This document shows positions 2,284 through 42,514 of a DNA stretch of 64,000 bases, piece after piece. The DNA comes from Lepidodermella squamata (taxonomy: Eukaryota > Animalia > Gastrotricha): assembly GCA_047495785.1 (NCBI GenBank), contig JBLDXI010000021.1, forward strand, positions 1,178,001 to 1,242,000, read 5' to 3'. The translations under genes were made by a program, and so were the position numbers. Numbering within the stretch: the first letter of the stretch is position 1; each line of letters opens with the position of its first letter. The notes below the pieces were generated by a model. That model was not told where the DNA came from. It searched no databases and saw nothing but the letters and a program-made list of their open reading frames with translations.

Positions 2284-5200
2284 ATGCGGATTTTTCTCGC
2301 AACAGTTTTATCTTTCATTGCAATAATAACGCAGGTATAAACGAAATCTGCCCTTGAATTGATTGGGCTTGATTTGCTCCATTTTTTCTAGGTCGAATGC
2401 GTGACAAAATGCACCGGTCGACTTATCACCGACGTAGCGGCAATTAGAGCCAACATGACAAAATGGAACGAAACTTTCACCGCTGTTATGAATAACTTCA
2501 CCGAAGCAGACTGGAAATGGTCTTCAAATATCTCAATAGAAGCTGAAAATGTCAAGGTGGGTTGTTGAAGAATTCGCCAGTATACGAAAATAATAGCACT
2601 CAACGGGCCGCTACGGTAGCGCTACGGCGACGGCTACCACAGTATGCTACCACAGTGCTTCGTAGCATTTTCGCGTGCTACGGCAAGCTCAAACCATTTT
2701 AAAAACATGATAACCGTAATGGGATTTTCACGAATTTTCGCATACTCCGTCGATAAGAGGTAGGCTACCTGAAAACAAGTCGAAAACTGAAAAACACAGT
2801 TAGGATACAAATTTTAAAAAAATCAGCATGTAGCCAGCTGAATGGCATAGGCTGAATGTATATCGGTTGAACCACGAGTGATAGGTGCGCTCAATACTGA
2901 TTGCAGCGATCTGCTTACAAAGACGTGTCTTATAATATAAAGATGTGGACAATCCGCGATACGTTTGGGAGTCTTCGGAACCCGTGAAATTGGGCTGGAA
3001 CCCAAACTCTAAAATCAGCCTAAAATACTATGTTATGGCGAACTTTGGGAACCCAGGTTGACCAGGCGATTGATGACGGGCGGGTTCCAGCGTATGCATC
3101 TGATAGCTGGGATCCCAGGGAACCCGTTGGCTACCCACGATGGGGAATTTCGTTTGACCGTGCCGGCAGTACGGTGCGAGTGCTATTATTTTCGCCATTC
3201 TTGAATTTAAAACAATTTTATACAGGTGACTGAAAACGCGAAACTGGCACAACTCAGCAAAGAAATATGGCAAACAGCTGCCTGCTATGACTGCAAAACT
3301 GCTGGTTGTGCACCGGATGAAATACGCCGGTTGTCCTATTATGAAAGTATAGGAACGGCCGCTTTGCCCGCTCAGCAGTTTAAAGACGTATATTTCCTCG
3401 AAAATGACTAAATCCCTCAGATATTAATGTCTCTCCCATTTAACAGTATTCCTACATTCAAACTGCGATGGAAAATATCTACGCTACCGCTAAGGTTTGC
3501 CCCTCGAAATCCGGGAAATCAGAATGTCTTCAATTGGATCCTGGTACAACATTTTATACCAAAATTAATCGATTCAAATAGAACATATTTCAGACCTTTC
3601 TAACATAATGAGTGAATCTCGCGATTACTGTACTCTTCAATGGGCTTGGGAGGGCTGGCGTAACGAAACAGGTCGCAAGATGCGCGGCTTCTTCACATCC
3701 TACGTCATTGTTAGCAACGAGGCAGCTAAAATGAATGGTGAGTACCGTAATTTGTTGAATCATGCATTTTTTGGTTAATTTTATTTCATTTAATTGATTT
3801 TATTTTATTTGTTAGGATTTGCTGATGCTAAGGAAATGTGGACAAAGCCTTACACTCGCGATGAGCCGACATTTTTCGAGCAAATGGAGCAGGCTTGGCG
3901 AGATGTGAAACCGCTCTACCAGGAACTTCACGCTTACACCAGGCGAAAATTACTAACGACGATTTACAAAGATTACGCGAAACTCTTCCCGACTAGCCGG
4001 CATATTCCGGCTCACATTTTAAGCGACATGTGGGCTATGGATTGGACAGGGCTTTACGACATTCTTGTGCCTTACTCGGACGCATCACCTATCGACATTT
4101 CAGTCCTTTTGAAGCAAAACGTTCGGAGAAATTTCTACTTCTCTGGATTAAATTTATTGATTTCTCATTTTAGAATTCAGGGGTGATGGATTTGTTTCGC
4201 GAATCGGACCGATTTTTCCAATCGATAGGAATGGAGCCGATGACCACTGATTTTTGGAAAAAATCTATTTTCACGCGACCAACTGATAACACGCAAATGG
4301 TCTGCCACGCTTCGGCCTGGGATTTTTTCCGGAAAACAGATTTCCGCATCAAAATGTGTACCCAAGTCAACCAGGAAGATTTTCAAACGGTTCATCACGA
4401 AATGGGTCACATCCAGTACTTCATGCAATACAAAGACCAGCCTATGGAATTTCGTGATGGCGCTAATTCTGGTTTCCATGAGGCGATCGGTGACCTTATT
4501 GCGCTATCTGTCATGACCCCGAAGCACTTGAAGGCTATCGGCCTTTTGCCGTCAACATTCGTCGAGGATGAGCGTAATTTTCTTGAAATATCTGTAGTTT
4601 TCCTTGATTTTTCTGTTTTTGTAGATACCAATCTAAACGCTTTGATGATGACCGCACTTCAAAAGGTTGCGTTTCTACCGTTCGGATATTTGATGGATAA
4701 ATATCGATGGGCGATTTTCGAGCGGAAAGTCGGTTTCGCCGATTTGAATGCTGAATGGTGGAAGCTGCGGTGTCAAATGCAGGGCATTTCGCCGCCGGTA
4801 ATGCGAACTGAGGAGGATTTCGACGCCGGCGCCAAGTACCACATTCCGGCCTCGGTACCCTACGACCGTTACTTTTTCTCGCACATCCTCCAGTTCCAAG
4901 CTCACCGGGCCATTTGCCAACGGATGAATATTACAAAAGATTTTCACAAGTGCGATATTTTCGGGCAGAAGGAGGCCACCTCGGCGCTGCGCCGTGCCCT
5001 AGCGCTGGGCTCGTCCCGGCCGTACCCGGAAGTGATGGAAATTCTGACCGGAAGCCGGACACTCGACTCAACAGCCTTGGTTGACTATTTCGCGCCACTC
5101 TACCGGTGGCTGAAAGAGCAAAATAAAAACGAAGAAAAAACTTCTTGGGATGAAAGCTGTCCGAGCAGCACACCGACATCGCCCTGCGGTGATTATCAAG

Positions 5201-5304
5201 CCATTAAGCTTCAACAATCGAATAACGCGGTTATAACTGGGCAAAAATGGTCTGAAGTCTTATACTCTCTCGCTTTATTTATCATTATGACCGTAAGGCA
5301 TTAA
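2284..5304 (+). CDS. ACE: Angiotensin-converting enzyme-like peptidyl-dipeptidase (M2), copy 1; multi-exon, single domain
   Basis: Signal-peptide exon MRIFLATVLSFIAIITQ; motifs WAWEGWR, CHASAWDF, HHEMGH (HExxH), GFHEAIGD, FDAGAKYH; hydrophobic C-terminal tail; short GT-AG introns. Confidence 0.93.
2585..3194. mobile_element. MITE-like insertion in ACE copy 1 intron 2
   Basis: 17-bp perfect inverted repeats CGAAAATAATAGCACTC (2585-2601) and GAGTGCTATTATTTTCG (3178-3194). The intron is 669 nt here versus 45 nt in ACE copy 2. No clear TSD. Confidence 0.65.
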
Positions 5305-6036: not shown

Positions 6037-7379
6037 CACCTTACTTCGATTTACATCGAGGAAAACAGCCGAAGTAAACCGATGGTAGCAATCCGAAACA
6101 GCAATATAACAGTCATGCAGTCACAAGCAATGTTACCCTAGTCTACATCGCAAAAGAACTGAAGTAAGCCGAAAAACTGGGAATTTCCACCCACAAGTCC
6201 CCCATCTAGACACCTTACATCGGTCGACATCACCAAAGGCGATGTAAACAAAAGTAAGGTGCCGAGCTATCGAACTAGGGAATAATTCAAGTTTTTCGAC
6301 CAACATTCGCAATGTAGACCGAAGTAAGCATCATCCGTGGCATCAGCGAGATCGAGAGCAGAAATCGCACAAGGGCAAGGCCTTTACACTAATTTACATC
6401 AGTTTTATCGAAGAAGAGTGTCAGGAGCAAAGTTACGAAATTACCGGGAAAATTGGTATTTTCGAGAATTTTTCGCAAGTTTTTAGCAGAGTACCACAAA
6501 TTGCACCAAAACAAGATATCGAGGTAAATCTCAAAAAATAGCATAAATTCTGGCAAAATTGCGAATTTAGGAAAGCACAGCAAAATCACAGGTATCAAAT
6601 AAAGGTTAAAATTGCAAATTTTTTGGGCATGTCCGCCAGCAGGAAATCAGGTCGAATTCGGCCGAGAATGACTGAGCGCCCACCTCCAAATTGAACGCTT
6701 GGAGTCGCGTGTAGTCGCCGAGCCGAGCAGTAGAGCTGAGCCAGTCGCCAAGAGCCAAGGGCCACGAGTCCAGCAATTCTGTAAAATAGCAAAATTCAGC
6801 TATGTCGAATAATAACGATAATAACGATGACCATAGCAACCATCAACTTTAAACTTTAAACTGTAAAAAACAGCAAAAATTAGTTTAATGAATACAAAAT
6901 CGTCAACCTTACAAATTATAGAAAATCCCACATCGCGATGGCGAGTCTAATCGAATGTCGCATTTCCTGAAAAATGACACGAGAATCAAGTATTAAAGCA
7001 AAATCATAATAGGCTGTGCAAATAAAAAGCCGCCTTAAAACCGCGAGAAAATTTTATTTCAAGAGCCAAAATCATTCTATTTTGCATTTTGATATTTTCG
7101 AAATTTTGAAATTGACATCTCTTGACTTCGGCTATTTTCATGAAATAAACAAATGGAAGCCCTCTCCGAGAGGCCGGTCCGGAGTTTCGTCCGAGTGAAG
7201 ACGCTGGTATCGGTTTACAACAGTGAATTTCCAGCTTTACATCAATATCCATCAGCATTTTAGATGAAGTAAATAAAAGTAAGCCGTTTTGCAGCTCATT
7301 GTTCCTGCTCCCATCGCGAAAAACAGCTTCCTTCAGAAGACATCCATTATTTTCGAGCCTTACAACAAAATACATCGCC

Positions 7380-7510
7380 CATGCTGTCATCAATGTCATC
7401 AGTGCCCATATTGCGGGCCGAAAATCCCCTGCGACTGTCACGTTTATTTTAAATTGTTTATTAAATAATTTATATTAAATAATAATATTGTTAATCGGAA
7501 TAATATAAAA
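7380..7510 (+). repeat. Left terminal inverted repeat
   Basis: CATGCTGTCATCAATGTCATCAGTGCCCATATTGCGGGCCG... is the reverse complement of 16453-16583. Confidence 0.95.
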
Positions 7511-7724
7511 ATTATAACGACGTAGTTAATAGCAACGGGCAAGCTGTTTCTTTCGCGGGTTATCACCTCCATCTGTTGCAAGAGCAAGATGGTTCAACTC
7601 TCACGTCTCGTATTGCTGACATTGCATGTGCATTCTTTTACCATCTTTCCACTGTTTTAACCAATGATAGTCGCAATGATACTTTCATTAAGAAGAATCT
7701 CATTTGTTTTAGCCTGTTAATAAC

Positions 7725-10573
7725 ATGTCTACTTGGGGCCATTCTTCGGCAGGCTTGCTGAAGCAGCTATCTACGCCTTCAACCTCAGCTACTGATGGTA
7801 GCAGCACACCTCGCATTGTTTCTGGTTAGGCTTTTTTCAGATTATTTTATAGTGGTATCAACTCAACTTACTGTGTTTCATGCTAGTTCTCAATGGTGCT
7901 TCGCCACAACCAAGATCGCCTATGCTAGCGGGTTCGCCCTTGCTTACTTCTGCTTTCGGTAATCGCTCTGGTATGACTTTTAAACTGAGTGCTTTGCTTC
8001 TTACTAGCATTTCTCACATGTGATTTATTACCAGTTCCTATTAAGAAAGCGATTCCTTCCGTTCATGCCACGCCAAAGGCTAGCTCTAGAAATTGTTAGC
8101 TTCTTATTAATTGCTTTTGATTCCATTGACTTACTTTATAATCTAGTGACCTCTGAAAACCGAGCACCTCCTGCCGTTGCTACCCCAGCGAAGGTGGCGG
8201 TGAAACGGCCACTAGAAGATGACGCTGCGAAAGCAATTCATAGTCTCAGTAAGTATTAGCATTTTTGGAAGTAATGTCTAATTGCAGCTGTTGTTTGATA
8301 GAAACTCAACTCACTGCTGAAAAGCGGAAGTATGAGATTGCTCGGGCGCAAGTGCTACGCCTTAAGAAATTTGCTCCGAATGGGCGGCATGTTGGCCATT
8401 TGACTGCCGAGAAAGCTCAACTTCCTTTGGCTCAGTTGTCTCGGCAGAAGAGGTCTCTGAGGCATCGGAGTGAATTGATTCGACCAATTCAGTCGATCTT
8501 CGATGATGTACAAAGCCGCGGCGATTTCTATCCTGTGAAATCATTGTCTGTCCAGGTTTGACTAAAATTAAATCATTGCCAGATTGAAGAGAATTAATGT
8601 GTCTCATGTGTTCCTTCTAGGTCAATTTCGATGGTGGAATACCAGCGAGGAAGTTATGGTTTGGCGATGCCGATGCTAAAGCTAATACCCTGCGCGAGTA
8701 AGTTGCTGATATTTTTTAAATGCTATTATTATATTCTTTTCCCTGTCAACTTCAGTGTGATGCGCGATTATTCCTCTCGCTACCTCTCGGTTAAAGATGC
8801 CTTGCGCCAATGCAATACCTCCTGGTGCCAGATTACTCAGCGAGAGTTCTTGGCTGAAAAGAAGAAGCTTGGCTCTATCCTGCCGATTAGCGTGGTGGTT
8901 CCGCCAGAAAGGGATGTAACCGATGAGGTCGAAGGTTTTAGCAATGCTGCGTTCATCCTGCCCAGCAAGCAGATGCCTTATCTCTTCCGAAACGGAATTG
9001 TTCCTCGACCTAACACCAACACAGTAGTCTGCCGAGTACAAGGTATTATTCATAATTTCAATAGTTGCCGACTTTTCATTGGCTATATAATCTTTGATGA
9101 GCCCTTTAAGCTTTCTTAAATGTCTCTCATCTTGAATATGTCGGTTTTTCTAGGTGATGGTACCGTCTTTCGAACTGGGAAAGATCCTCATTATCGAATG
9201 AATTTCGCCTTTCATCATCAGAAGACGCGTGTTACTACAAAAACCGAATATCTGGCTGCTGTTTTGATGGGCAAGGAGACTCGTCACAACTTGGAGCTCC
9301 TCTCGCCTGTCTTCGCTGATTTCAACGCCATAAAAGTGAACGGTGTTCTTCTTGATGATGGCACTAAGTTAACCGTTAAATTGTAAGCAAAAATTTTGGC
9401 TTTTATGGCAATATTTATCTGAGAATTTTGCGGACAGGTCTCTATGCGCCGACCTGCCTGCCATCTGCAAAATCGTTGGCACGAGCTATACCGATGCTCT
9501 AGCCTGTCCGTTCTGCACCTTCAATTTCGTTGATGATGCCAAGCCTCTGGATGTCCTCATCACAGAGCTGGACCGGAAACCAAAGCGACCCTTGCCTGAT
9601 TCGCTACTCGATGTCGACAGCGATGACATCTATCTATGCACGCTGCATGCTGCTCTGAGAATCGCGTTTCTTTTTTTACGAGCCGTGAGTAGAAAATGAA
9701 GTCCTTTCAGCTTATTTACCTCACATTTACCTAATTTTTTAGTTATTCCTCTTCATGAAAAAAGAAATCGAAGATTATGAATCGAAAATTGTCTGCCTTT
9801 TGCGATCGTTCGATAAAAAGGCTGAAATCGCGTTCGTGAAAGAGGACATCGCCGTGCACCACATGAATCACCACACTCTTTTCAAGGTGGTTTTCGACTC
9901 GGAGGAGTCTTGGTGTCCTCTTCAACTGTGCCGGGGAGGCTGGGAGGCTAAATATCTTCTTGCTTCGTTCGGCCGCGCCAAGAAGCCTCTCATCAATTTC
10001 TTAGTCTCGAAAAATGTTATATTCGACAAGAAGTCCAGCCCGGCGGACTTGGCTCAGCTCTGCGTCGATGCTGGCATGCTAAATTCGCTGGAACCTAGTT
10101 CCATGCAAACGAAGTTGGTGCAATTTGGCGAGGCAAAAGCTCTCTTCAAGCAGCTTTTCGCTGTCATTCGCTGTGGCGACGGCTCCAAGCCAATCCCCGA
10201 GACACCCGCCGATTTCCATGACTTTGCCAACATTCTTCGACGACTAAGTGGATGCTATACTCCTTACCTCCACATCTTCCAGTTCCATTCGCACGATCGT
10301 CTGGCGAGGCTGAGGCAGGAGGGCACTTATCTGTCGGCTATATCGGGCGATAACGTCGAGCTCTCGAACAAGGTCGGCAAAAACCAGTTGTCGAACCAGG
10401 TATGCCGCGTCAACAACGACGAAAGTCAGCAGCTGATGAGGCTCTACAACATCCAGCTGGCTACTCTGGCGACTCGAGTCGAGGACGACGTAGCCGAAGG
10501 CAGGGCAGCGGTGATCTTCACTGCAGACGATTCTGTGGAACCGTTTGATTTCACCTGCGATGGTGATATGTGA
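7725..10573 (+). CDS. RAG1-core/Transib-like DDE transposase, about 10 exons
   Basis: Hand splicing keeps the frame across about 9 GT-AG introns, including 9043-9153, 9383-9437 and 9685-9742. Motifs: VQG-D-G (D at 9156), LMGKET, LCA-D-L (D at 9451), CPFC, CTLHAALRI, TPYLHIFQFH and SGDNV-E-LSNK. These parallel RAG1 GCDG / GYDE / CTLC / DALH / YFHKTLAH / SEGNESGNK. The 5'-most exons and the start codon are less certain. Confidence 0.85.
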
Positions 10574-11631
10574 TATATTTGTTTCTGTCATTGTTATATA
10601 TTTAATATAGCCGTCTTAATATTTCATCTTTTTCCTGATTATTTTCTTTCATCTGCGATGGCGCTGTAATTGTTATTATGATTCGCCAATTATATTGATA
10701 TCAAATCTTGGGATATTATACGTGTGTTTCCACGACTGTATGATAATTATTTGTGGTCTTAACTAGTCCCACTAAACGATGCTAATCGATGCTGGGCAAT
10801 AAATTTATGTAAAGCCGCCTTAATGATTTGCTCTCTCTGAGGATACGTCTTGCAAATCACGTTAATTGTGCTTTCATATAATATTTATACTGTATATTAC
10901 TTCGCCGCTTTTCAAGAAAGATGGTCAATCATTCTGTCCCTAAATAAGTTAGCAATATTACTTTGATTTCTTTGATTTTATTTATGACATTCTCAGCCGC
11001 CAGCCGCCTTAATGATTTGGGGTCTAACCCGTCCTACCTATATGTCGATAATTTATGGCCGTATATAGGCACCTTGATATTTTTTAATAATTCCTATGCC
11101 CTTCTATGAGCTCGTCTTTGATAACCAATTCTTGTGCTCGAGCAGAAAATTGCGCGTTTTATTATGTTATAACCACCATATTCTCGCATCGACTGGTTTC
11201 ATTGATAAATGCTTTCCGATTTCCTACGAATTAGCATTTTAGCTCGGCTATCGTAAAGCAACCTCGTTTTTTGTGAAATTATTCGACACGTTAAAATTGA
11301 TATTAATAATTTTATGAGCTCTATATCATTGAATCCTCCGATCAAAACTCAGCTCTTTCTCAGCCTTTCTGTTAATATAATTCCTGCCTAGAATCCAATT
11401 GCTGCTTTTGTTTGATGTTTCGAGGTCAAAATCATCAGGCACCGCTATTAACTACTTCCCAATTTATTCCAAAAAGGGAACAAATAAAAGCAGGCCAATC
11501 ATGCGTTTTTATTTCGTATTTTACGAATATTAATCCGAAAGTACAATATTGCGATGAAGCAACGATTGCGATGAAGAGCATTATTAAACATGAAGCATCG
11601 AGAAAATCAGAAAATCAGAAAATCAAAAGTA

Positions 11632-12024
11632 TCACTTCTTAAAAAGTCGCTTAGGTTTCGGCGCTGGTTGTATTTTGCCCATGTTCGAGCAAAACAGACG
11701 AAACAAAATACGGCGTTCCTGCTTGGCAGCACCGCTGTTGCGATTGTGATCGGGGTCAAGGCGGTATCGATTGCTCATAAGCACGCGAGGCTCGAGATCG
11801 TAATAGGCCGCCACCTCCTCGTCGGTTGTAGGTGTTTTCGGGTGGATGCGATGATCGGGATGCTGAAATATAAAATAACAGAGCCAATTAAAAAATTTAG
11901 AGTGAATTTAGAGTGAAATTACCTCTTCAACCTTTTTGCATGGCGACTTTTGGCGATCAGCTACAACGCGGGGCTGTCGCCGTTGCTTGGGGGTACTGGG
12001 AGGCGCCTTCAGTTTTCGCTCCAT
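11632..12024 (-). CDS. Transposon cargo: small basic ~110-aa protein, 2 exons (12024-11923, 11862-11632)
   Basis: In-frame phase-0 GT-AG intron gives MERKLKAPPSTPKQRR...KSPCKKVEE|HPDHRIHPKTPTT...IQPAPKPKRLFKK*. Confidence 0.55.
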
Positions 12025-12129
12025 TATGTCAACTTTACGACGGGGACGCTTATTAGACACCGAAGACATAACGTCGATATAGATATGTAAATAAAATGAG
12101 GAGATTCTAAAATAAATAAAAAACAGATT

Positions 12130-12720
12130 TCAGACTCGAACTGAATTGAGACGAATAATAGCCTTGCAAATGGCCTGAGGCGAGTTTTCAATTATGAGTT
12201 TTTTCATAGAGAAAGATACATTATTAACAAGGCTGGTTCTAGTGTTTCTTTTCAGAGCGAAAAGCGAGACGACAATATCGAAACGACGGAATATCTCTGC
12301 AAGATGTTCGGCCGAAATGCGAATGTAGCGCTTTTTCTCGCTACAAAATTCACAAATTTTAATCGTAATCGCGCATTAGTCACCGTTTACCCACCTTTTA
12401 AAAATTTCCTGCTGAGCCAACTTACCTGCGGGAAAAACGCAATGACGGGCTACGACCTTGAGCTGATTCAGCATTGGCTTAGCTGCATCGCGGTTGAGCT
12501 GGGTTTCGAGTGCTAAAACCACTTGATTGGCCAGGAATAGCATCTCTTTTCGGCGATCAAAAACAGCGAAAGGATCGAACAGCTGGAGTTCAAGGACGCG
12601 AACGAGCCGCACTTGTTGCTGTTTCTTTAAGTAATCGTCGACGCGCCGAAATTCAGTCACGGCAGAGCCATAAATCACAGGCTTCTTCAAAGTTGCGCGC
12701 TCCCGCAAACAATAGGCCAT
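12130..12720 (-). CDS. Transposon cargo: unknown ~180-aa protein, probably 2 exons
   Basis: The ORF MAYCLRERATLKK... can splice through a ~53-nt intron into EKKRYIRISAEHLAEIFRRF...RLNSVRV*. The donor choice is ambiguous. Confidence 0.45.
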
Positions 12721-13651
12721 AATTAAGGTGGATAATCAACAACAACTAAGGATGAAAAAGATACTTATAAAAATATTTATTAAGGCGTCTAATTAACGCA
12801 ATAGATAAATCGGAACAGGAGTCGAAGCGAGCGCAACAACGAATTTATAAAAAAATTGGGCGCGCAACTTAGGTAATTTGGTTGATAAAATGAGCGCATT
12901 TAGCGAGCGGATAGGAAATATCAAGCGTTTTGGCGCATGGGCCTACAAATACGCGCAAGCGCAATTCAATTAAACGAGATCTGAGGCGCGGAAAGCGAGA
13001 GAATTAATAATACTGCTTGGACCGCGCACGTATAGCAGTAACTCTTCGCGAAGCGATGTATTAATCTACAATCGAAAAACGAGGGCAATGATTTCGACAA
13101 TGAGTCGAAGCTGATTGGCGTATAATTTTAATATATTATTGCTACTACAAAACAGCCGGCGCCTAACAGGTGTAAATGGCGGCGATGATTCCGCTGCTAT
13201 GATAGCGGTGATTATAGATCAAACACCTAGTCAACCTTTTGATTCGGCTAAATAACACCGCTGTTTGATAAGTAAACAGGCGCGTTACAATCCATCCCTA
13301 GCGCGCACGCAAACACAAGTAGATGCACGCACGAACACGAACAGGTGCGCTCGGGCCTCGAAACCAAAATTCGACCACGGAAAACCACGGAAAGGTGTGA
13401 AAAAAGTAAGAACAATGCAGCTGGTTGACGCTGACAATAAGGCGTGAATTGAAATGAATAGAAGATGTGTGTGGCTATACAATAGCTATTCTACAGATCG
13501 CGCACAACAGCACTCGCTCACGCCGTAGCTGTTCCAGGTGTCAATCGATGATAAAATCATGTGTTGCTATTCTCGTCCCGAAATTGAATTGAAAAAAACG
13601 AAGTACACGTGAAAATAGGAAAATTATTCTTTCAATCGCAATTTTGAAAAA

Positions 13652-14080
13652 ATGCCAAGAACCCCTGAGCAATTGCTTGAACACAAAATTAGAATGCGAG
13701 TGTATCGCGCTAACCGCTCTGCTGAGAAAATAGCCGCGGATCAAGAACGCGATAGACTGCGAAAAGCGGCATTAACTGCCGCTACTGTAGAATCTGCGGA
13801 AAAGCGAGCGGCGGCAACAAAGCGAGGTTTGTTATAAAAATTACGTGTTTCAAATTATATTTTCTTTTTATCATTTTCAGCATTGGGTGATCAACCCGTT
13901 GTGACGTATATCGACGAAGATGACATTATTGACTGGGAGCAGCGGCCGGCTGTAAATTATAGCACTTGGGACCCGTTACCTCGATTTCAACTAGCTGGAT
14001 GTACAATTTCTCTAAAACCTTGTGATAACGCTGTCAGGCCAAAAAACACTCGTGAAATGAATAAAATAAACAATAATTGA
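13652..14080 (+). CDS. Transposon cargo: unknown ~125-aa protein with charged helical N-terminus, 2 exons
   Basis: ORFs 13652-13837 and 13883-14080 join in frame through a GT-AG intron at about 13827-13880. Confidence 0.5.
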
Positions 14081-14270
14081 GATAGATTGGTGCTTTTTCC
14101 TTCTGGTTATAGACGTGTAATATAGAACAAAAATCAAACGAAAATACCATCGTATATTTATTTTGCAGCTAGGGTGAAACTGGCGAGTCTTGAACAATTT
14201 AACAAAATTACAACACATCCACATTTTTCGTGAGGGCAAGTTTCAACATTACTCGCATTTGAAATCAAAA

Positions 14271-16080
14271 TCACACATGAAGAGAGGCGCACATAATCAA
14301 TTCAGAACCTTCAATATTGACAAGGATTTTTTCATTTTTCACAGCTAATAATAAGCCGAAGAACGCTTTCGAAACGTTTTTACGATCTAAATTATTCACG
14401 ACGTCATTGAAGCTGAGATTATTCGAGGCAACAAGGGAAGATAATTGATTATAGAAAAAGCGATCGCTATCATCGTCAAGTCGTAATAAACTGTGAAAAA
14501 TGTGCGAGCCAGCCGGAAACAAAGATTCATCATACGGTTGTACGCTAACAGACTCAATCTCAGTTTGTACCTCGGTGGCCTCAACAGCATCGGCCGTGGC
14601 TGAATTTTCACCATTATCGGGAAGACTCGGCATGAATGACGGTATAGATCTTTTCGCAACGGGAGCGAACCTTTGTAAAATTGAAGCAGCCGGTCGTTTC
14701 CGAGAATTTAGTTCGGAAATAGGTACAGTTGATGTCGGCGGTTCATGAGGCAAATCGATAGGAGCAGCTCCGACTTGAATAACTGGAACTGGCACCAGAG
14801 TCGCAGGAATGTTGTCAGATACAACGCAGCCTGAAAAAATTAAGTAGGATTAAATAAGTCACTAAATAAATTAATTTAATTTACCCTGAGGCCAGCTTTG
14901 ATCAGTTGTGAGATAACTAACAGGCTGAGGAGCTGAACTGGGAGGTAACGGATTCCGAAAACCTGAATAACGAATAATAAAATTATGAATATAAAACAGC
15001 GACTGGTTCAACTTACTAGGAATGAACAGAACGTTCTCGTCTTTTCCAGTGCTGGCCGGGCGGATGACTACTGCAGTAATAAATACAATCACGAAAAAAA
15101 TTGGTGAATAAAACAATTACCAGGCTCGTCGAACTTGGGTATATCCTCCGCCTTGGTTAAGAAAATCGGCAAATCTACAATAATTGAAAGGTGGTAGTTA
15201 TACACGAAATCTATTCATCACTTGTTACCTAAGGCACCAAAAAGCGTCTTCTGAAGACGATTGCAGACCTTGATGCTGGGTTGTCTGATAAGTTGAAGGG
15301 CGGGGACAAGGCGGTCTGACAGAAGACTGCCAACACGTTCGGTTCCTTTTGACCTCGTCGTGTGAAATTCCGTGTAGAATGGGTCAAGTTCAATCTCCTT
15401 CTCAAAGAAGGTGAGGGTTGTTGATGGCTGGAGAGGCTTCGACTCGAAGGCAGTTCGCTCATCCCATGCGAGGACTTCGTGAATAGTAAGCAGAGGTTCA
15501 GTCTTGAGTTTCATCTCTGCAAGAAGTTGGTTAAAAGGAAAAGCAGGAATAGCTGCAGCCTCGAAGATGGTCAAACCAAAGCCGTCATCAATAATCGGTT
15601 CTGCATCAATAGGGGCGATCGGATTTTCAGCCACGGAAGTCATGTCAGGGGTCAACCGAGGTAGCATTTCAAGCGGCTAAATAATTACCAAAGAATTAGG
15701 TGAACAATTCATAACTGCGAGCTTACCATATGCGAGGCAATAGCGTCAGAAATATCCGCACAACCAAGCTGAACAAGAGCGGTCGCCAGATAGGTGTTCG
15801 TATCGGGACGCTCCGCTCTCCGTCTAGACATATCTACTTGTAAAATGCACGAAGCATCATTAGCATCGTGAAACAGCCTGTCAATTTTCAGGCTGTAAGT
15901 GACACTAAGAGAATAAATTAACTGGCCTGAGGTTCGCAAGTCAAGATTTGGCAACGATTCGGCGCATTCACAGAGGGCCTTGATGTCGACATTGGCGATC
16001 AGGGAAGGCTCGATCGGCTGCTTAGCAATGGACTTGCGAAACACACGCCCGCGTAGGAACAATTCGAGTGAACTCATCAT
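14271..16080 (-). CDS. Divergent Rad21/Rec8-family alpha-kleisin (cohesin subunit), 6 exons, ~515 aa, inside the transposon
   Basis: The N-terminal segment NVDIKALCE...LDLRTSGQLIYSLSVTYSLKIDRLFHDANDA matches the Rad21_Rec8_N pattern (LaLRlSgqLl.GvvrIY.rK...L..D). The C-terminal segment LSFNDVVNNLDRKNVSKAFFGLLLAVKNEKILV matches the kleisin winged helix (R..aA..F..lL.L). All five GT-AG introns splice in frame. Confidence 0.8.
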
Positions 16081-16452
16081 CGCAATAAGTTAATATCTAT
16101 GGGTAGAAGCAATACATGCGAAGGTAATGAGAACCAGCAAACTACAGCGTATGATCGATGTTGGCAGGCTTTAGCTAGGGCTTGATCGGAGAAGGGAGAA
16201 ATAGGTCATCGATGATCGCTGTCCTATACTCATCCTGAAGCATTCGACAGCCGCTATTTGTCAACCAACCCTGTTTTTAAATGGAATGATCAAGACAGAC
16301 TCGAACAAGAATGCACATGCACCCTCAGCAATAGTAGACGGCAGACGTGAGAGTTAAACCCTCTTGGAACAGCTGGAGACGATAAACCGCGAAAGGACCA
16401 GCAACCCCGCAGCCCCGCAGCCCCGTTGCTATCAACGTCGCTAATTAATTTT

Positions 16453-16583
16453 TTTTATATTATTCCGATTAACAATATTATTATTTAATATAAAATATTT
16501 AATAAACAATTCAAAATAAACGTGACAGTCGCAGGGGATTTTCGGCCCGCAATATGGGCACTGATGACATTGATGACAGCATG
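16453..16583 (-). repeat. Right terminal inverted repeat
   Basis: Reverse complement of 7380-7510. Confidence 0.95.
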
Positions 16584-17340
16584 CCAAAACTTGCCTTACA
16601 TCTACTTACATCAACGAAATTTCGACCATTTACATCCGCTTAGTTCCAAAAACCCGCAATTATTTGACTTTACACGGCTTGACTTCAAACATTTTACCCA
16701 AAAATTTCAGTTCGGGTCCATAAAAGTAATAAAAAATAAATGCTCAAACTCAACACATTTTTCTATTAACTGTTTTAGCATGAAGGTACAATCGCCTATG
16801 CCTTTACCTTCCATGAACCCATGTTGGTTGTCTTCTAAAATTTTCAAACTTTTAACCGAAATTTGCGTTCCAAAATACGCGCGTAACATTTTGCGACTAT
16901 GCTTATATTAGGCTTATTCCTCGGTAATTCGCACATTTTTTCAAGTCACCTTTCTTGGGTATCGGAATCAAAATTAGATTAAGAAAATCGTCAGAAACTC
17001 GCCTTTCCGTCCCAATTCGGTTAAGCAGTACATACAGCCACTCTGTTCCTATTTCTTCTTCCGATTTCCTATTTGCCATTAGCATCTCTTTACGCACCTC
17101 GTCTTGACCCGGTGATTTTCCAAGCTTCTCTTTTTTTAGGGCTTCTACTATTTCGTCGCGCGAGATGTTTTCCATGGTTTGTGCCGGTTCATTTACGGCT
17201 GAAAAATGAACAGCCGTCATTTTTCTAGCTGAGATTTATTTTCTACTTTTATGGTCAGTTCAACGCCATCTACTACTCCCATGAAATGTTGCCTCCATCT
17301 CCCCGCTACCTTCTCTGCTTCCGTCAAAATTTCGGCGATC
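16584..17340 (-). mobile_element. Decayed non-LTR retrotransposon (RTE-like) reverse transcriptase fragment
   Basis: Motifs RWRQHF, GKSPGQD, IPIPKKGDLKKCANYRGISL and QHGFMEGKGIGDCTFMLKQLIEK, spread over several frames with stops. Truncated at the transposon's right end. Confidence 0.85.
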
Positions 17341-21378: not shown

Positions 21379-23779
21379 ATGCGGATTTTTCTCGCAAAAG
21401 TTTTATCTTTCACTGCAATAATAACGCAGGTATAAACTTTATCTGCCATGGAATTGACTGATCCTGATTCTCCTCATTTTTTCAAGGTCGAATGCGTGAC
21501 AAAATGCACCGGTAAAATTATCACAGACGTGACGGCAATACGAGCCAACATGGCAAAATGGAACGAAACTTTCACCGCTGTTATAAATAACGTCACCGAC
21601 GCCAAATGGAAGTGGGCTTCGAACATCTCAATAGAAGCTGAAAATGTCAAGGTGGGTTATTGAAGAAATTCGCCGGAATTTTAATCAATTTTACAGGTGA
21701 CTGAAAATGCGAAACTGGCGCAACTCAGCAAAGAACTATGGCAAAACGCTGCCTGCTATGACTGCAAAACTGCTGGTTGTACACCCGATGAAATACGCCG
21801 GTTGGCCTATTATGAAAGTATAGGAACGGCCGCTTTGCCCACTCAGCAGTTCAAAGATGTATATTATTTACCCGAAAATTGCCGAATTTTTTGGGGTTTT
21901 ATTCCAGTATGCCTACACCCAAACAACGATGGAAAATGTCTACGCTACCGCTAAGGTGTGCCCCTCAAAGTCCGGGAGATCAGAATGTCTTCGATTGGAT
22001 CCTGGTACAGCATTTTATACCAAAATTAATCGATTCAAATGGGGCATATTTCAGAACTTTCTAACATAATGAGTAAATCTCGTGATTACTGTACTCTTCA
22101 ATGGGCGTGGGAGGGCTGGCGGAACGAAACAGGTCGAAAGATGCGCGGCTTCTTCACATCCTACGTCATTGTTAGCAACGAGGCAGCTAAAATGAATGGT
22201 GATACCGTAATTTGTTTGAATCATGCATTTTTCCATTTTTTTGTTAATTTTTTTCATTTAATTAATGTTATTTTAATTGTTAGGATTTGCCGATGCTAAG
22301 GAAATGTGGACAAAGCCGTACACTCGCGATGAGCCGACATTCTTCGAGCAAATGGAGCGGGCTTGGCGAGACGTGAAGCCACTCTACCAGGAACTTCACG
22401 CTTACACAAGACAAAAATTACTAACGACGATTTACAAAAATTACGCGAAACACTTCCCCAGCAGCCGGCATATTCCGGCTCACCTACTCGGAAATATGTG
22501 GGCTATGGATTGGACAGGGCTTTACGACATTCTTGTGCCTTACTCGGACGCAGCAGCTATCGACATTTCCGTCCTTTTAAAGCAAAACGTTGGAAAAAAT
22601 TTCTGCCGCTTAATTTCTTGATTGAGTTTATTGGTTTTCATTATCTAGAAATCCGGAGTGATGGATTTGTTTCGCGAATCGGACCGATTTTTCCAATCGA
22701 TAGGAATGGAGCCGATGACCGCTGATTTTTGGAAAAAATCAATTTTCACGCGACCAACCGATAACACGCAAATGGTGTGCGACGCTTCGGCCTGGGATTT
22801 TTTCCGGAAAACAGATTTCCGCATCAAAATGTGTACCCAAGTTAACCAGAAAAATTTTCAAACCGTCCATCACGAAATGGGTCACATCCAGTACTTCATG
22901 CATTACAAAGACCAGCCTATGGAATTTCGAGGAGGCGCTAATGCTGGTTTCCACGAGGCGATCGGTGACCTTATCGCGCTATCTGTCATGACCCCGAAGC
23001 ACTTGAAGGCTATCGGCCTTTTGCCGTCATCATTCGTCGAGGATGAGCGTAATTTTCTTGAAATATCTGTAGTTTTCCTTGATTTTTCTATTTTTTTAGA
23101 TACCAATCTAAACGCTTTGATGATGACCGCACTTCAAAAGGTTGCGTTCCTACCGTTCGGTTATTTATTGGACAAATACCGATGGTCGATTTTCGAGCGG
23201 AAAGTTGGTTTCGCCGATCTGAATGCCGAGTGGTGGAAGCTGCGCTGCCAAATGCAGGGCGTTTCGCCGCCGGTAATGCGAACGGAGGAGGATTTCGACG
23301 CCGGAGCCAAGTACCACATTCCGGCCTCGGTACCCTACGACCGTTACTTTTTTGCGATTATCCTCCAGTTCCAAGCTCACCGGGCCATTTGCCAACGGAT
23401 GAATATTACAAAAGATTTTCACAAGTGCGACATTTTCGGGCAGAAAGACGCCACCTCGGCGCTGCGCCGTGCCCTGGCGCTGGGTTCGTCCCGGCCGTAC
23501 CCGGAAGTGATGGAAATTCTGACCGGAAACAGGACGCTCGACTCGACAGCCTTGGTCGACTATTTCGCGCCACTCTACCGGTGGTTGAAAGAGCAAAATA
23601 AAAACGAAGAAAAAACGTCTTGGGATGAAAGCTGTCCGAGCAGCACACCGCCGTCGCCCTGCGGTGATTATCAAGCCATTAAGTTGCAACAATCGAATAA
23701 CGCGTTTATAACCAGGCAAAAATTGTTTGAAGTCTTATACTCCCTCGCTTTATTTATCATTATGACCGTAAGGCATTAA
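21379..23779 (+). CDS. ACE: ACE-like peptidyl-dipeptidase (M2), copy 2; recent duplicate of copy 1
   Basis: Same exon structure and highly similar sequence to 2284-5304, with HHEMGH and EAIGD intact. Homology also covers upstream DNA (~21010 vs ~1705) and the 3' UTR. Confidence 0.93.
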
Positions 23780-23880: not shown

Positions 23881-26800
23881 TCAAGCTGCGATTGGTTCAG
23901 TGCTAATATCGATAGGTTCGATCATAGTTCCGTTCGGGAAGCGGGGCTGGTCGGTGAGTTCGGCCGGCCGTTGTGGGAAGAGGGTGGTCAGCGATAGGAT
24001 CATCGATATGACGTAGCCGATGAGGAAAAGCCGGTCCAACACCATGGAAATCATGCGCCACGCCTCAGCGTTTCGCTTATTCGCCTCCTTATCAGCCATG
24101 CGTTGGATAAAATGAGCTAAAAGCGATCTGATATGGTGAATTTCGCGCTCTACGCTGAACATTGGTGACGCTTCGTATTTACTAGTCCTGATTGGTGTCG
24201 CTGATGTTTCAACGTAGTCGACTTGCCGTTCAAGTTTGCGAAGAACTGGCTCCATCAAGAGCGAGTTGAGGGACGGAATTTCAGCGCTCATCTAGGAAAA
24301 GGAGAACAATTGTTAAAAAAAATTAAACCAGAAGGAGGGGAAGATAAAACTATAAGCAGGTTTTTTTAATTCGAAAATTGCCTTTAGCCGCAACAAATCT
24401 GAAATTTCAACCATTCCAAATACTCATGAATATGTTGAGAACTTTCGTACTTTTAATTCGCAATATTAGGCAATTTATAACGCGTTTGGCTCTCCTTGGA
24501 CTAAAGAAGGGTAATTTTGGGAAGTATATTCAGCAGGTGGATTTTTCATATTCACCTCAAAATGTGGGTCAAATTTCAGAGAAATTTAAGAAAAACTCTT
24601 GTTGGTTCAAGAAAAACTAAAACCAGTCGTCCTATCCTGATTTTTTTACAGAGAGGACAAGGCCAATTACTAATTTCGTTTAAGAATTTCCAATTATCTA
24701 GGACATATTGAGAGGGTCTCCAATCGATATCCGAAATTATGAAATTATGAATTATGAAAACTAACATTGAACTTGTTGTAATGTTTCAGGTCGAAGGAAC
24801 TAGACGGGAAGAATCGCGGCTTTTTCCGATGTTGCGGACTTTTCTGCTTCGGCCAGTTTGTCTGACGTCGAATTTTCGCCACCGGATCGTCGCTATTCGT
24901 CGCCAGGTCTGAGAAAGCACCATCTGCACCATCGTCACTAACGCAGCTCGACTCGATGCAACTCGGCCCCGAAGCTCGACTGGCTGCTGAGGATTGGCAT
25001 CGATGGGTGGCTTCGACAGTTGCCCCGACGAAAACTCCGCGCCTCGTCGGCGAAAACGTGGCAGAAGCCGCGACTAATGGCTCGCGAACTGTGGTTTTAC
25101 CGCAACTACCACCAGGCAGGCAAGAATCACAGGCGATCGGCGCCAAATCGTCTTCGATGCCCGAGAAATGGTAGTTGTTACTAACAGCGGCGTGGTAGCT
25201 ATTACACGGCGATGGTTTGTGTTCACAAAGCTTAATCATCGGCGAATGGCCGGTTGGATGGTGCAGTTCGTCGACGTAATCCCGGTTATTCACATCGCCC
25301 TTGCATATCTCGGAGCAAATGTTATCTGGCGCCAATTCACAGCCAATTTTCGGCGGCTTATTCTTCCGTTCTTTTTCCTGAAGAACGGTGTCGACGTAGA
25401 TGTCCTCCAGGCTTTTATCATTGCAAAGAACAATTTGACGGCAGGACGGTTTCATCGATCGGCTGGGCGCTTTGACAATCACGCAGTCGAACATTCGTTC
25501 GAAAAATATGACAATTCGTTGTTTTAAGGTGGTGGCACGGCGTTTTTTCGGCGATTCTTTCGCAGCGAGTTCGCGGCGTCTCGCTCGCAGTCGAATTTGG
25601 CGCAGGTGTTCGAGGTGTTGCATGCTTTGAAGTAGTCTCATCGAAGGAGGCACGTGGATGAACAGGGAACGGGCTATCACGCCGATGACAACGTAGACAA
25701 GCCAACGACTGGGTGGATTTCGCTTATCAGCCCGATAATGCATATCCACCAGGATTGAACATAGAAACGTTGAACACGTTGTCATTACCATATTGAAACA
25801 ATAATAGGCACCTGATGAAAAAATTCAAAAATTTCAGGTGAAAATTAATAATTTGTTTACCAATAATCGGAATTTGTTTCGCTGTAGGAGGCGTTGATTC
25901 TTTGAGGAGTAACAACAGCATGAAAAATGCGACAAAAATGTTGATGCCGAGAAGCATTTTAGCCGGCGTCTCGGGCGGAAGCATGAATAGAACCATTGTG
26001 ATGAAGGACAGCAAAACGCAAGGTAAAATCAGGGTGTAGCTGTAAAAAGTCGGCCGGCGGCGTAGTTTTAAATGGAAGGTCAGGTCAGGATACGGCTCAT
26101 TCGGGCAGCACTCGTAAAATGCGACATTTTTAACCGCATCGTGCTCGAGGATGATCCACTCCTGGGAGGCGACGTATTCCGACAGTTCAATGTACTCCTT
26201 GTCGTCGATAAAAAAGGGGTCGAGGGCATTGCCGTTGTACGTCCAGGAACCGAATTTCATTTTACACGTCTGTTCGTCGAACGGAAAGTAGGTCGTGTCA
26301 ATGAAGCACGTGCTTTTAAAAATGGCTGGCGGAATGTAGGTCACCTCGCCATCTGGGTTAATTAGAGCCATTGTGCTGCGGTGTTCTGCCAGCCGCTCGT
26401 CGGCATAGTTGTACAGGACGAAATCGGGTTTCCAGATGCTGCTGATCGGGACTCGAACTATCGTGATGTTATCATGCTCATCCGGAGACTGTCATCATTG
26501 TAAAAAGAGCAACAGTGATTTTAATTATTCGAAAAATCCGATATTAAAATTCAATTATTTATAATTGAAATAGATTTATTCAGTAGGATTTAATTGGGGG
26601 ATAAAAACTAAATTTTCCGTAAACAGGCTTCAAAACGAACCTATTTTTCCCTAGAAATGCAAGCGGGTCAAGCGAAAAAATTTAGCTAGAAAAACCTGAT
26701 TTACTGGATTATATTTAGATTGCAATCCTCACTATTTTAATAATTTAAAAAATCCACCTTAAATTTAATAAAATTTAAGAATTCGGAATTCGGAATTCGG

Positions 26801-28649: not shown

Positions 28650-31539
28650 ATGGCTTGGTTCAAGCTTGAATTTTGCGTTTTTATACTTATTTTTGTTGAG
28701 CACAGTCTTCAGATATCGGTAAAAATTATCGCGTGAAAAACACTTGTGATTCTTGCGACTACAATTCGCGATGTTTTGTAGATTTCGTCGCATTCCGGAA
28801 CCTGCGACAGCACATTCACACCTGATATTTCCGCTATTCGCAATGTATTGGCAGAATGGAACCGGACGTTGTCCGAATCGCTGACGCAAAGCGCTGAGGC
28901 TGAGTGGAACTGGAACGTCAATATCACAAGTGAAAATGAGCAAATTATGGTAGACATTTTCTATTCGATTTCCGCCTGCCTTTAACACATTATTTTTTTC
29001 GATTTTTTATTCTACGAAAAGAACGCTGAAAGCGAGAAGAGCGCGGCTTTGCAGAAGAAATATTGGCAAGAGGCGAAATGCCTGAGTGACAAAGTTGTTA
29101 ATCACTGCTCGGAAGAATACCGCCGGCTCTCGGCTTACGACAACATTGGGGTCGCAGCACTACAGCCCATCGATTACAAAAACGTAAAATTTTCAAATTT
29201 TCAAATTTTTAAATGAAAATTACAATGATTTTATTCTTCAACTTCCCCGCGACTGAGCATCTATACCCTTTAGGGTTTTGAGGAAAAGGTTTTAATTTCA
29301 AATTAGGGTCAAGCTATTCGTACATAACTATGTACGCAGAAATTGCTATTCGTACATAGTTTTGCGCGAATTTTCAGAGTTATTCAGATGGGTGTGGAAA
29401 TTCGAGATTTGGCGATGATACCATGGAATTTCGCAGAGAGATGCAGCAAAGTGAGGCCTATCTAGTGGTCAAATTTCGTCAGATTATCTTCCAAAGTATT
29501 CACGCTAGGGTCGTGAAAAACAATTCAAATAATGATATTTTGCGAATCTACCTTAGGGGGTCCAATAGTGATTTTTTGAGGGGAGATAGGCCTGATGGTC
29601 AGCTATCAGCACGCAAAAAATTAGATTGATGGGATGAAAATTGAGCAAGCCGTTTATCTTAGAAAAAAGCATATCGAAACTATGTACGAATAGCAATTTT
29701 CGCGTACATACTATGTACGAATAGACATTCCGTTCAAATTAAGTTAAATTTTTTGATATATTAATTTTTTCAATTTTTTCAAATTTATTGCAGTTCAATT
29801 ATATTCTTAATAAAATGACGAACATTTATTCGACGGCAAAAGTATGCTATCCGCGGACCTGCAACAGCTCATCTTCAACGTGCCTGGATCTGGAACCTGG
29901 TTTGCCTACTTTTCTGAAAATTTATCAATTAAATAATGAATTGTTTGTGAAGGTTTGACAATGCTGATGAAAGAGTCGAAAGATTACTGTTTGCTACAAT
30001 GGGCATGGGAAGCTTGGCGCAATGAAACGGGTCAGAAAATGCGTGGCTATTTCACGACGTATGTTGTGCTGCAAAACGAAGCTGCCCAGGCTAATGGTGT
30101 GATTTTTCCAATTTTTTTATTAAATTAAAATTCGATTTTTATCACTCAGGCTTCAAAAGTGCGAAGGACATGTGGACGAGCGATTTCACAAGCGACGATC
30201 CGTCTTACTTTGACCAGTTCGAGAAAGCTTGGCAGCAAGTGAAGCCTCTGTACCAGCAACTCCACACCTATGTCCGTCGAATGCTTAGACACGTTCGATA
30301 CCGCACTTTTGCCGATCAATTTCCTATGACTGGCCACATTCCTGCTCATTTGCTTGGGAATATGTGGGCTCAGGATTGGACCTCGCTCTACGACTTGGTT
30401 GTGCCATACCCCGAGGCGCCATCTATCAATCTGACGGATCTTCTTAAACAAAACGTAAGACAGGAAAATAATTGAAAATCTCAAAAAATTCGACAAATTA
30501 AATTCCGATTCAGGGCTCAACTGTAAGCGATTTGATCTCCGAAGCTGATCTGTTCTTCCAATCAATCGGCCTCCGACCAATGACAAAGGACTTTTGGGAA
30601 AATTCGGTTTTCGAACGGCGTAACGACACAGAAATGGTCTGCCACGCTTCGGCCTGGGATTTCTTGCGCCAAACCGATTTCCGAATCAAAATGTGCGCTC
30701 AAGTCGACGCAGACTACTTCCAGACCATTCACCACGAAATGGGACATATTCAGTATTACATGCAATACAAAGATCAACCGGTTGAGTTTCGTAACGGAGC
30801 TAATCCTGGGTTTCACGAAGCTATTGGCGATCTGATAGCGTTATCAGCAATGTCTTCGACCCACCTTAAAGCTATAGGATTACTTCCGAACAATTTCTCT
30901 GAGAGCGCTGGTAAATTTATAAAAATGATTTATAAAATAATTGAGCTATTTTTTCGCACAGAGACTTCGATGAATAATTTGATGGCTATGGCGTTGGACA
31001 AGATCGCCTTCCTACCTTTTGGATATCTTATGGACAAGTATCGCTGGTCTGTTTTCGATAAGAACATCTCGTTCGCGAACCTCAATGAAGGTTGGTGGGA
31101 ACTGCGCTGTGACCTTCAGGGTGTATCGCCGTCCGTCAACCGCACTGAAAATGACTTCGACCCGGGCGCCAAATTTCACATCGCGGCATCAGTTCCTTAC
31201 GATCGCTACTTCTACGCCTACATCCTCGAATTTCAAATTCATCGAGCGATATGCCGGCGAATGAATATCACAGAAAATTTGCATTTATGCGACATTTACG
31301 GGCAGAAAGATGCGACGGCGGTTCTGAGGGAGGTAATGGAACTTGGCTCGTCCAGGCCGTATCCGGAGGTACTGCAGATGTTGACTGGAAGCCGAACTTT
31401 GGACGCGTCTGCTCTGGTTGATTACTTCGCCCCGCTTTATGAATGGCTGGTCGAGCATAACAAAAAAGCTGGCGAGGAAGATGTCGCTTGGTGCAGCAAC
31501 TGCCCGACCGAGGCACCTTCAAGCCCTTGCAAAATTTGA
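28650..31539 (+). CDS. ACE: ACE-like peptidyl-dipeptidase (M2), copy 3; no hydrophobic C-terminal tail
   Basis: Leader exon MAWFKLEFCVFILIFV; motifs [30 protein letters not shown] and FDPGAKFH; ends PSSPCKI*. Confidence 0.92.
29306..29732. mobile_element. MULE-type MITE in an intron of ACE copy 3
   Basis: About 48-bp sub-terminal inverted repeats (CTATTCGTACATA..TATGTACGC..AAATTGCTATTCGTACATAGTTT). 9-bp TSD TTCAAATTA at 29297-29305 and 29733-29741. Confidence 0.8.
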
Positions 31540-41800: not shown

Positions 41801-42514
41801 GACGATCAAGTGGTTATTTCCAGCTGCCAAATGCAGCGGTGTATGTCCCCACTTGCTCTCCTTGCTGCGAATGTCTGCGCCGCGATCGAGCAGTAGACGG
41901 ACGATTTCCAGTTGCTGGTTCAGCCAGTTCCGGCAATTAGCGACACGGTGCAACAGAGTGAAGTTGCGCATGTCGTACAAGCAGGCCGTGTCCAGATTAA
42001 GATATCGCCAATTCGGGTCAAAGTTGCCGCCTGTTGCTGCATCGATCTCGGCAACAAGTCGCCGAACCACGGCAGCGTCAGCATAAGCAGCACAAGCTGA
42101 TCCAAGCCGCTTGTAAAGGTCGAATACGGCAGCATTTTGTGTCTAAAAAATAAATCCTCAATACTCAATAGGTTGTGATACTAATGATTAAATGACAGGT
42201 GTGATCTGTCAACCTGTACAACCTGTTTTTTTCTTCATCAGCTTTTTCTGTTTTTTGGAAACTTTACAAGTGTGCAACTCGCCAAACATGTTATGTACTT
42301 TGTTCAGTTGAGAATTTAATATATTCAATATAATATGTTATAGAGCAGCGAGTTTTGATTGTAATCATATAACTATGCGACTTGATTCGCGATTCAATAT
42401 ATTATATATTCTCACCTGTGGTGTCGTGGCGTCGTCGCTTTCAGCGTCGTAGTCATGGCTTTCAGCTGAAGCGGTCGCCGATATAAGTAGAATGCATAGG
42501 AGCATCCATGCCAT
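38835..42514 (-). CDS. Large ankyrin-repeat protein (~28-30 repeats) with predicted signal peptide; 1-nt frameshift near 40489
   Basis: Exon 1 at 42514-42416 (MAWMLLCILLISATASA...) and exon 2 from 42142. ORFs 40466-42070 and 38835-40448 join if one base is restored in CGA-TC-GCC-GAT, where R-G-A-D is expected. Confidence 0.8.

Follow-up and report, generated by a model that had tools for sequence, protein, structure and literature searches.

The stretch of DNA analyzed here (the window) comprises 64,000 nucleotides of contig JBLDXI010000021.1 of the gastrotrich Lepidodermella squamata (positions 1,178,001 to 1,242,000, forward strand). At positions 7380–16583, it harbors a 9,204-bp element with two convergent intact genes located between terminal inverted repeats (TIRs). 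The first gene encodes a predicted transposase, the second a protein resembling the alpha-kleisins, which close the cohesin ring of SMC1 and SMC3 (structural maintenance of chromosomes, SMC). The element is regarded as a cut-and-paste DNA transposon that is young and probably autonomous and that very likely carries a true kleisin gene as cargo. A preliminary description made from the letters alone had proposed a TIR-bounded DNA transposon with a second convergent gene, and the ends and the two genes listed below bear this out.

7380–7511, plus strand: left TIR, 132 nt, 98% complementary to 16452–16583, terminus 5'-CATGCTGTCATCAATGTCATCAG
16452–16583, minus strand: right TIR, terminus also 5'-CATGCTGTCATCAATGTCATCAG
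7378–7379, no strand assigned: left flank CC, candidate partner of 16584–16585 in a 2-bp target-site duplication (TSD)
16584–16585, no strand assigned: right flank CC, candidate TSD partner of 7378–7379

Direct reading of the left and right TIR revealed 2 mismatches in 132 nt. Beyond the TIRs, a weaker inverted similarity extends about 260–277 nt inward, to ~7637 on the left and ~16307 on the right side; blastn of the left against the right end aligned 160 nt with 93% identity and a further 95 nt with 77%. The window contains exactly two occurrences of the first 40 nt of the element, one per strand, whereas none of 100 shuffles contained this sequence. Both ends terminate in CATGCTG, which is of the CA..TG type and not heptamer-like. 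The flanking sequences are ...TCGCC|CATGCTG on the left and CAGCATG|CCAAAAC on the right, so that CC/CC alone matches as a flank duplication, for which the chance is 1/16 at this single insertion. A TSD of 5 bp is excluded for this copy (TCGCC on the left, CCAAA on the right), and a search of the window for an empty site revealed neither a paralogue of the flanks nor a second copy of the element. Within the TIR tip, 7 nt from the end, a direct repeat (GTCATCA-AT-GTCATCA) is located at 7386–7402 and mirrored at 16561–16577; it is a candidate transposase-binding site. The element contains no meaningful tandem repeats, and an Rfam scan of the window gave no match.

The transposase and kleisin-like genes begin 345 and 503 nt inside the element ends, respectively. 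Because both gene starts are situated behind partly repeated subterminal sequence, the two genes may use end-borne promoters in common. The kleisin-like gene has the following structure.

16080–15727, 15676–15229, 15174–15121, 15070–15015, 14960–14884, 14829–14271, minus strand: six exons of the kleisin-like gene, product of 515 amino acids
15823–16005, minus strand: N-terminal kleisin domain, residues 26–86 (Pfam PF04825, Rad21_Rec8_N)
14274–14423, minus strand: C-terminal winged-helix domain (Pfam PF04824, Rad21_Rec8, below cutoff)

Two public runs, designated X1 and X2, were compared with positions 10600–16583 of the window. A spliced contig of 1,450 nt in X1 spans 16051–14340 and corresponds to the exons of the kleisin-like gene with 0 differences. 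The five introns (50–54 nt, GT..AG on the minus strand) are absent from this contig, whose extent leaves the first 10 and the last 22 codons of the gene outside. The joined exons form an open frame of 515 amino acids from the ATG at 16080 to the end at 14271. The kleisin-like gene is thus spliced and transcribed, and the intact six-exon gene on the minus strand that had been predicted is confirmed by the contig and the open frame. In X1, the introns of the gene received no coverage and the spacer between 11800 and 14200 was essentially uncovered; the region 10600–11420, just past the transposase stop, was covered unspliced. Because introns and spacer are uncovered and the exons are spliced, X1 behaves as a transcriptome.

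The convergent transposase gene and the sequence between both genes are organized as follows.

7725–7824, 7887–7958, 8008–8094, 8147–8248, 8302–8555, plus strand: exons 1–5 of the transposase gene, predicted to have 10 exons (splice model)
8621–8697, 8756–9042, 9154–9382, 9438–9684, 9743–10573, plus strand: remaining exons of the transposase gene (splice model), product of 761 amino acids
9156–9158, plus strand: predicted first catalytic aspartate D328 (GDGTVF), a sequence motif assigned by analogy, in an exon that homologues do not cover
9451–9516, plus strand: predicted second catalytic aspartate D408 (CADLPA), followed 18 residues on by C426-x2-C429, translation CADLPAICKIVGTSYTDALACPFC
10271–10360, plus strand: H662-x4-H667 (HIFQFH) and predicted catalytic glutamate E691 (NVELSNK), from the translation
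10574–11420, plus strand: transcribed stretch, probable 3' untranslated region of the transposase gene (X1 contigs over 10600–11420, which do not show the strand)
11421–14270, no strand assigned: inter-gene spacer without a protein family match, its open reading frames (ORFs) without a Pfam match, its structure variable between copies

The transposase model was built from ORF segments, direct reading, and a frame check; it is least reliable at the start codon and in exons 1–3. The predicted frame is uninterrupted over 761 amino acids up to the stop at 10573. All nine introns (49–111 nt) are of the GT..AG type, with a GC content of 0.27–0.39 compared to 0.50 in the coding sequence. The open frame and the DDE-type signature are in accordance with the intact, spliceable DDE transposase proposed earlier for the plus strand.

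An exhaustive phmmer search with the last transposase exon against 1.84 billion representative proteins yielded only two relatives, both fragmentary. P0001 (49% identical) stems from a Logan contig of SRR21620664 (L001, 1,475 nt, no context) and P0002 (47% identical) from a metagenome contig of the European Nucleotide Archive (ENA; ERZ27313165, 639 nt, no context). H667 and E691 as well as the surrounding QFH, LRQ.GT, and AIS..N.E do not vary between the window, P0002, and L001. A third match, P0003, was discarded as a repeat artefact. Metagenome scans gave no matches. An AlphaFold2 (AF2) model of the last exon, calculated with a five-row alignment, reached a predicted local distance difference test (pLDDT) of 46. 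Positions 1–1475 of L001 represent the 3' half of a transposase gene from another eukaryote, which is split by short introns and encodes the same acidic tail (EPFDFxCDxD).

The assignment of the second gene is based on searches of Pfam and PDB, which were made exon by exon. The first exon matches the Rad21_Rec8_N model with 25.6 bits (cutoff 23.1 bits, E 1.5e-5, profile positions 30–91 of 110) and encodes an N-terminal kleisin domain, including an LRTSG-type helix. The middle 320 residues contain 12% proline and match no family. In a single-sequence AF2 model (pLDDT 54), the last 100 residues adopt the H-H-H-E-E topology of a winged helix. When this model was compared with 350,542 PDB chains using Foldseek, RAD21 in human cohesin (6wge_C) was ranked first, and the top 40 also included the C-terminal domain of ScpA (4i99_D) and two RAD21 C-terminal chains, all of them non-significant. 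VIA-align reported Z scores of at most 3 to assorted winged helices, the C-terminal domains of Scc1 and ScpA among them. When the ESM Atlas was searched by shape alone, a ScpA cluster ranked first (template modeling (TM) score 0.40) and a PF04824 Rad21_Rec8 cluster third (TM 0.39). In canonical kleisins such as Scc1 and Rad21, the N-terminal domain binds the SMC3 neck and the C-terminal winged helix binds the SMC1 head. A regular-expression search for the separase motif ExxR found no occurrence in the 515 amino acids. An upstream exon supplying the first kleisin helix was considered and discarded because of a stop 3 codons upstream and the absence of an MFY-type ORF within 200 nt.

Several observations weigh against the reading of the locus as an intact transposon with a kleisin gene. 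The splicing of the transposase gene is a prediction, and the label "RNA" for X1 is only a guess, its coverage pattern resembling that of a transcriptome. Positions 1–29 of the N-terminal profile are unaligned and the first helix of the domain is not recognizable. The last exon reaches 14.9 bits with PF04824 (E 0.017), less than the cutoff value of 22.7, and none of the fold matches, all derived from a model with a pLDDT of 54, is significant. Using phmmer, neither of the two terminal kleisin exons retrieved a solved kleisin from PDB. Word-indexed protein searches with the first and last exon of the kleisin-like gene and with the last transposase exon found no relatives, a weak negative, since the length filter (0.55–1.75 times the exon) excludes full-length proteins.

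In a rival explanation, the second gene encodes a lineage-specific accessory protein with a chance resemblance to Rad21/Rec8. The N-terminal domain exceeds its cutoff by just 2.5 bits, the C-terminal domain stays below, the fold matches all have E values of about 1 or more, Z scores of at most 3, or TM scores below 0.5, and no pairwise match to solved kleisins was obtained; moreover, many CMC elements have accessory proteins. Nevertheless, this explanation is very unlikely. Two independent exons match the two Pfam models of one family, and each match is located at the protein terminus where the domain belongs. The E value of 0.017 for PF04824 covers 24,736 models and corresponds to ~7e-7 for the single model predicted by the N-terminal match. 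The shape-only search and Foldseek independently rank C-terminal domains of ScpA and RAD21 at or near the top, and folded ends joined by a proline-rich linker of 320 amino acids constitute a kleisin-like architecture. Considering the pair of Pfam matches and the weak fold leads together, we are strongly confident that a kleisin is the only coherent reading of the second gene. Kleisin signatures had been suggested for both termini: the Pfam check supports this for the N-terminus with a match above cutoff, whereas the C-terminal match to Rad21_Rec8 is weak. As the pairwise searches remained blank, the protein is very diverged.

Compared with the alpha-kleisins Rad21/Scc1 and Rec8, the protein is similar in its N-terminal domain, its C-terminal winged helix, its size of about 500 amino acids, and the long proline-rich, probably disordered linker. 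Unlike these, it is encoded by a transposon, extremely diverged, and devoid of ExxR.

Information on further copies was obtained from run X2, which has a different organism label and in which 94% of the sampled words were found. The interior of the element, including the kleisin-like gene, showed a uniform word depth of ~260–330, and the outer part of the right TIR a depth of ~1,980, ~6 times that of the interior; word depth in X2 is not equal to copy number. One contig lacks 16341–16451 (111 nt); in a different one, the right subterminal region is fused to left-internal sequence. Breaks or divergences of contigs are located at 12405, 12448, 12736, and 14032–14034, and the depth is raised at 12400–12800. 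For 14979–15165 (187 nt, exons 3–4 of the kleisin-like gene), two variants were present, one with 0 differences at a depth of 212 and one with 10 at a depth of 87. This pattern looks like that of a family with multiple copies, in which the spacer varies and short derivatives occur; the TIR excess and the deletion contigs are signs of short non-autonomous derivatives with common TIRs. The 2 mismatches between the TIRs and the near-identical copies in X2 make the family appear young. The excess of TIRs over the interior and the single copy in the window would also be compatible with a composite locus, in which two separate small TIR elements flank a host segment with two host genes. We consider this extremely improbable, because the ends are perfectly inverted, the similarity of the subterminal regions becomes weaker inward from either end, and the interior has a uniform multi-variant depth in X2.

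The transposase had been described as RAG1-like, with RAG1 and Transib profiles suggested as a check. RAG1-family Pfam models did not match any exon translation, P0001, or P0002 at E values up to 10, and the solved chains of RAG1, RAG1L, and Transib in PDB remained without a match at E 10 with single exons and family profiles, the PDB searches covering four exons and two family profiles in all. The Pfam models Transposase_21 and Plavaka likewise matched neither the exons nor P0001 and P0002. The signature of the CMCT clade, which comprises EnSpm/CACTA, Mirage, Chapaev, Transib, Plavaka, ESTA, as well as Lanisha (PMC12730594), is present (D408 ... C426PFC429 ... H662IFQFH667 ... E691). A C(2)C after the second aspartate is characteristic of CMCT and RAG1, and the clade mostly has 5'-CA..TG-3' termini and TSDs of 2–5 bp (PMC12730594). 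Among 40 language-model neighbours of the last exon, the only named ones were two RAG1 ZnH2/ZnC2/C clusters (0.92 and 0.90). For exon 9, which encodes D408 and CxxC, Plavaka and Transposase_21 (0.93–0.95) were ahead of RAG1, and for exon 8 (D328), DUF1280, RAG1_RNase_H, Transposase_21, and Plavaka were all below 0.9. The local resemblance to mouse RAG1 is good, as its spacing (D-x19-CxxC, Hx4H-x20-E, and E-S-G-N-K) has counterparts here; this is treated as a lead, not as a test.

Transib and ProtoRAG generate a TSD of 5 bp, and the ends of RAG1/Transib elements are heptamer-like (CAC(A/T)GTG). The RAG1-like affiliation is supported only in a loose sense: the CMCT signature and the CA..TG termini are present; a Pfam or PDB match to RAG1 or Transib, a 5-bp TSD, and a heptamer end were not found. 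Judged by these motifs, the transposase is to be placed in the CMCT clade, a relative of RAG1, where it putatively represents a rare and deep lineage distinct from RAG1 and Transib proper. The 2-bp duplication would, if confirmed, be Mirage-like and not Transib-like.

For the presence of a kleisin gene in a young transposon, capture without benefit has to be weighed. The gene might be a fast-evolving host (possibly meiotic) kleisin that has not yet decayed in a young family. DNA transposons such as CACTA, MULE, and Helitron commonly capture genes, the youth of the family (2 TIR mismatches, near-identical copies in X2) means that intactness proves little, and no relatives were found that might show long-term retention. 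On the other hand, captures are usually fragments, whereas here a whole six-exon gene with its own introns is correctly spliced and expressed. Its extreme divergence (25.6 bits, far below the scores of typical members, and blank phmmer searches of PDB) speaks against a recent capture, and it is placed symmetrically to the transposase gene behind the subterminal repeat. Passive cargo is thus unlikely. As the best explanation overall, we lean towards a co-mobilized accessory factor rather than a passenger; the cargo is, on balance, expected to be functional for the element.

Cut-and-paste elements gain copies only via sister-templated gap repair or by moving ahead of replication, and their two ends, which lie far apart, have to be paired. 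Sister-templated repair as well as loop extrusion are under the control of cohesin, which also drives RAG scanning during V(D)J recombination. It is conceivable, though tentative, that the kleisin acts via the host cohesin subunits SMC1 and SMC3. In such a case, its N-terminal domain would dock on the neck of the host SMC3 and its C-terminal winged helix on the head of SMC1, and the docked kleisin would close an element-specific cohesin-like ring. A separase-resistant ring is proposed because ExxR is absent from the kleisin-like protein; separase would not be able to open it. The most likely benefit would be the sister-chromatid-templated repair of the excision gap, by which the donor copy would be restored and a net gain achieved. 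Alternatively, ends located 9 kb apart could be brought together by loop capture or extrusion. The complete scheme, in which the kleisin forms a separase-resistant element-specific cohesin with host SMC1/SMC3 for templated gap repair or loop-extruded end pairing, is doubtful, and a specific role in repair or synapsis, taken by itself, is rather unlikely.

The missing separase motif could also be explained by a function directed against the host, in which the kleisin serves as a non-cleavable decoy against SMC-based silencing or restriction or biases meiotic segregation towards chromosomes with the element. Both SMC-docking ends are kept, whereas the linker has no family match, and SMC5/6 is known from virology to restrict foreign DNA. 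This possibility is decidedly unlikely, because the best profile match is to the alpha-kleisins (cohesin type) and not to Nse4 or CAP-H, and a dominant non-cleavable cohesin kleisin is expected to be toxic.

The genomic surroundings of the element are eukaryotic, with a GC content of ~42–45% and genes cut by introns of ~50 nt. The following tandem family was identified.

4183–5304, 22658–23779, 30532–31539, 44811–46067, plus strand: large exons of tandem genes resembling angiotensin-converting enzyme (ACE-like; Peptidase_M2), Pfam E values of 1e-135 to 1e-173

The element is located between the first two ACE-like paralogues. The preliminary description had named the only Rec8 of the host at a conserved syntenic locus as a case that would speak against its reading; the site of the element is not plausible as a conserved cohesin locus. 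To the right of the element, at a distance of about 120 nt, a degenerate, frame-broken stretch resembling a reverse transcriptase was noticed by visual reading on the minus strand (16707–17260; motifs ..KCANYRGISLI.. and ..QHGFMEGKG..FITFMD). Its pieces have no Pfam match, and no continuation of the fragment across the insertion was found. Three long ORFs on the minus strand (33132–34760, 38835–40448, and 40466–42070) consist almost entirely of ankyrin repeats (Ank_2, E values down to 1e-119); the latter two are adjacent and maybe form a single gene. Further uninterrupted ORFs of 448, 753, and 348 amino acids are located at 49245–50591 (plus strand), 52528–54789 (plus strand), and 24745–25791 (minus strand), none of them with a Pfam family at E 0.001. 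Since other genes in this region are cut by ~50-nt introns, such long intronless ORFs are unusual and could represent mobile-element or orphan genes.

If the proposed function is correct, the element would be the first known mobile element to supply a subunit of the cohesin machinery. It would connect SMC complexes with DDE transposition in a natural and testable manner, within the clade that gave rise to RAG, and the SMC–kleisin machinery would be a recruited transposition cofactor in a lineage with kinship to RAG ancestors. Should the kleisin be a passenger, an expressed multi-copy protein of this type without a separase motif could still give rise to new meiotic kleisins or to a conflict with the host.

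Co-mobilized cellular genes in DNA transposons are already known (RAG2L, TET/JBP), whereas a kleisin as cargo, with the connection to SMC complexes that it implies, is new. No paper describing a transposon-borne kleisin was found in a full-text literature search, in agreement with the earlier statement that no described transposon with such a cargo was known. In ProtoRAG, a transposase gene and a convergent partner gene are located between TIRs as in the element described here, and the transposases are alike in the C(2)C/H(4)H zinc-binding insert and a catalytic E-x-x-N-K motif, a likeness to RAG1 that the language-model neighbours of the last exon support. The partner differs, being a kleisin without a match to kelch or PHD models, whereas RAG2L of ProtoRAG is a kelch/PHD protein. 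Furthermore, the flanks have 2 bp and not 5 in common, a heptamer-like end is missing, and neither Pfam nor PDB gave a RAG1 match. With the CMCT clade, the element shares the 5'-CA..TG-3' termini and the presence of more than one gene, which is often found in these elements; the candidate flank duplication of 2 bp would, if confirmed, lie within the range of 2–5 bp. It differs from this clade in its CATG ends, which are not of the CAC..GTG type, in having a kleisin as accessory gene, and in having only two fragmentary relatives (47–49%).

TET/JBP dioxygenase genes are carried by fungal hAT, Harbinger, EnSpm, Plavaka, and KDZ elements (PMC12730594). As in these fungal elements, a complete gene of cellular origin, presumed to modify host chromatin for the element, is located between the TIRs. 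Here, in an animal host, the gene encodes a structural subunit of an SMC complex instead of an enzyme. In Paramecium, condensin I assists PiggyMac, a transposase-derived nuclease (10.1101/2025.10.03.680307), which sets a precedent for such assistance by an SMC complex. If the proposed function is correct, both systems would combine an SMC–kleisin complex with a nuclease of a transposase family. In Paramecium, however, the complex is encoded by the host and the transposase is domesticated, whereas at the L. squamata locus an active-looking element would contribute a kleisin of its own.

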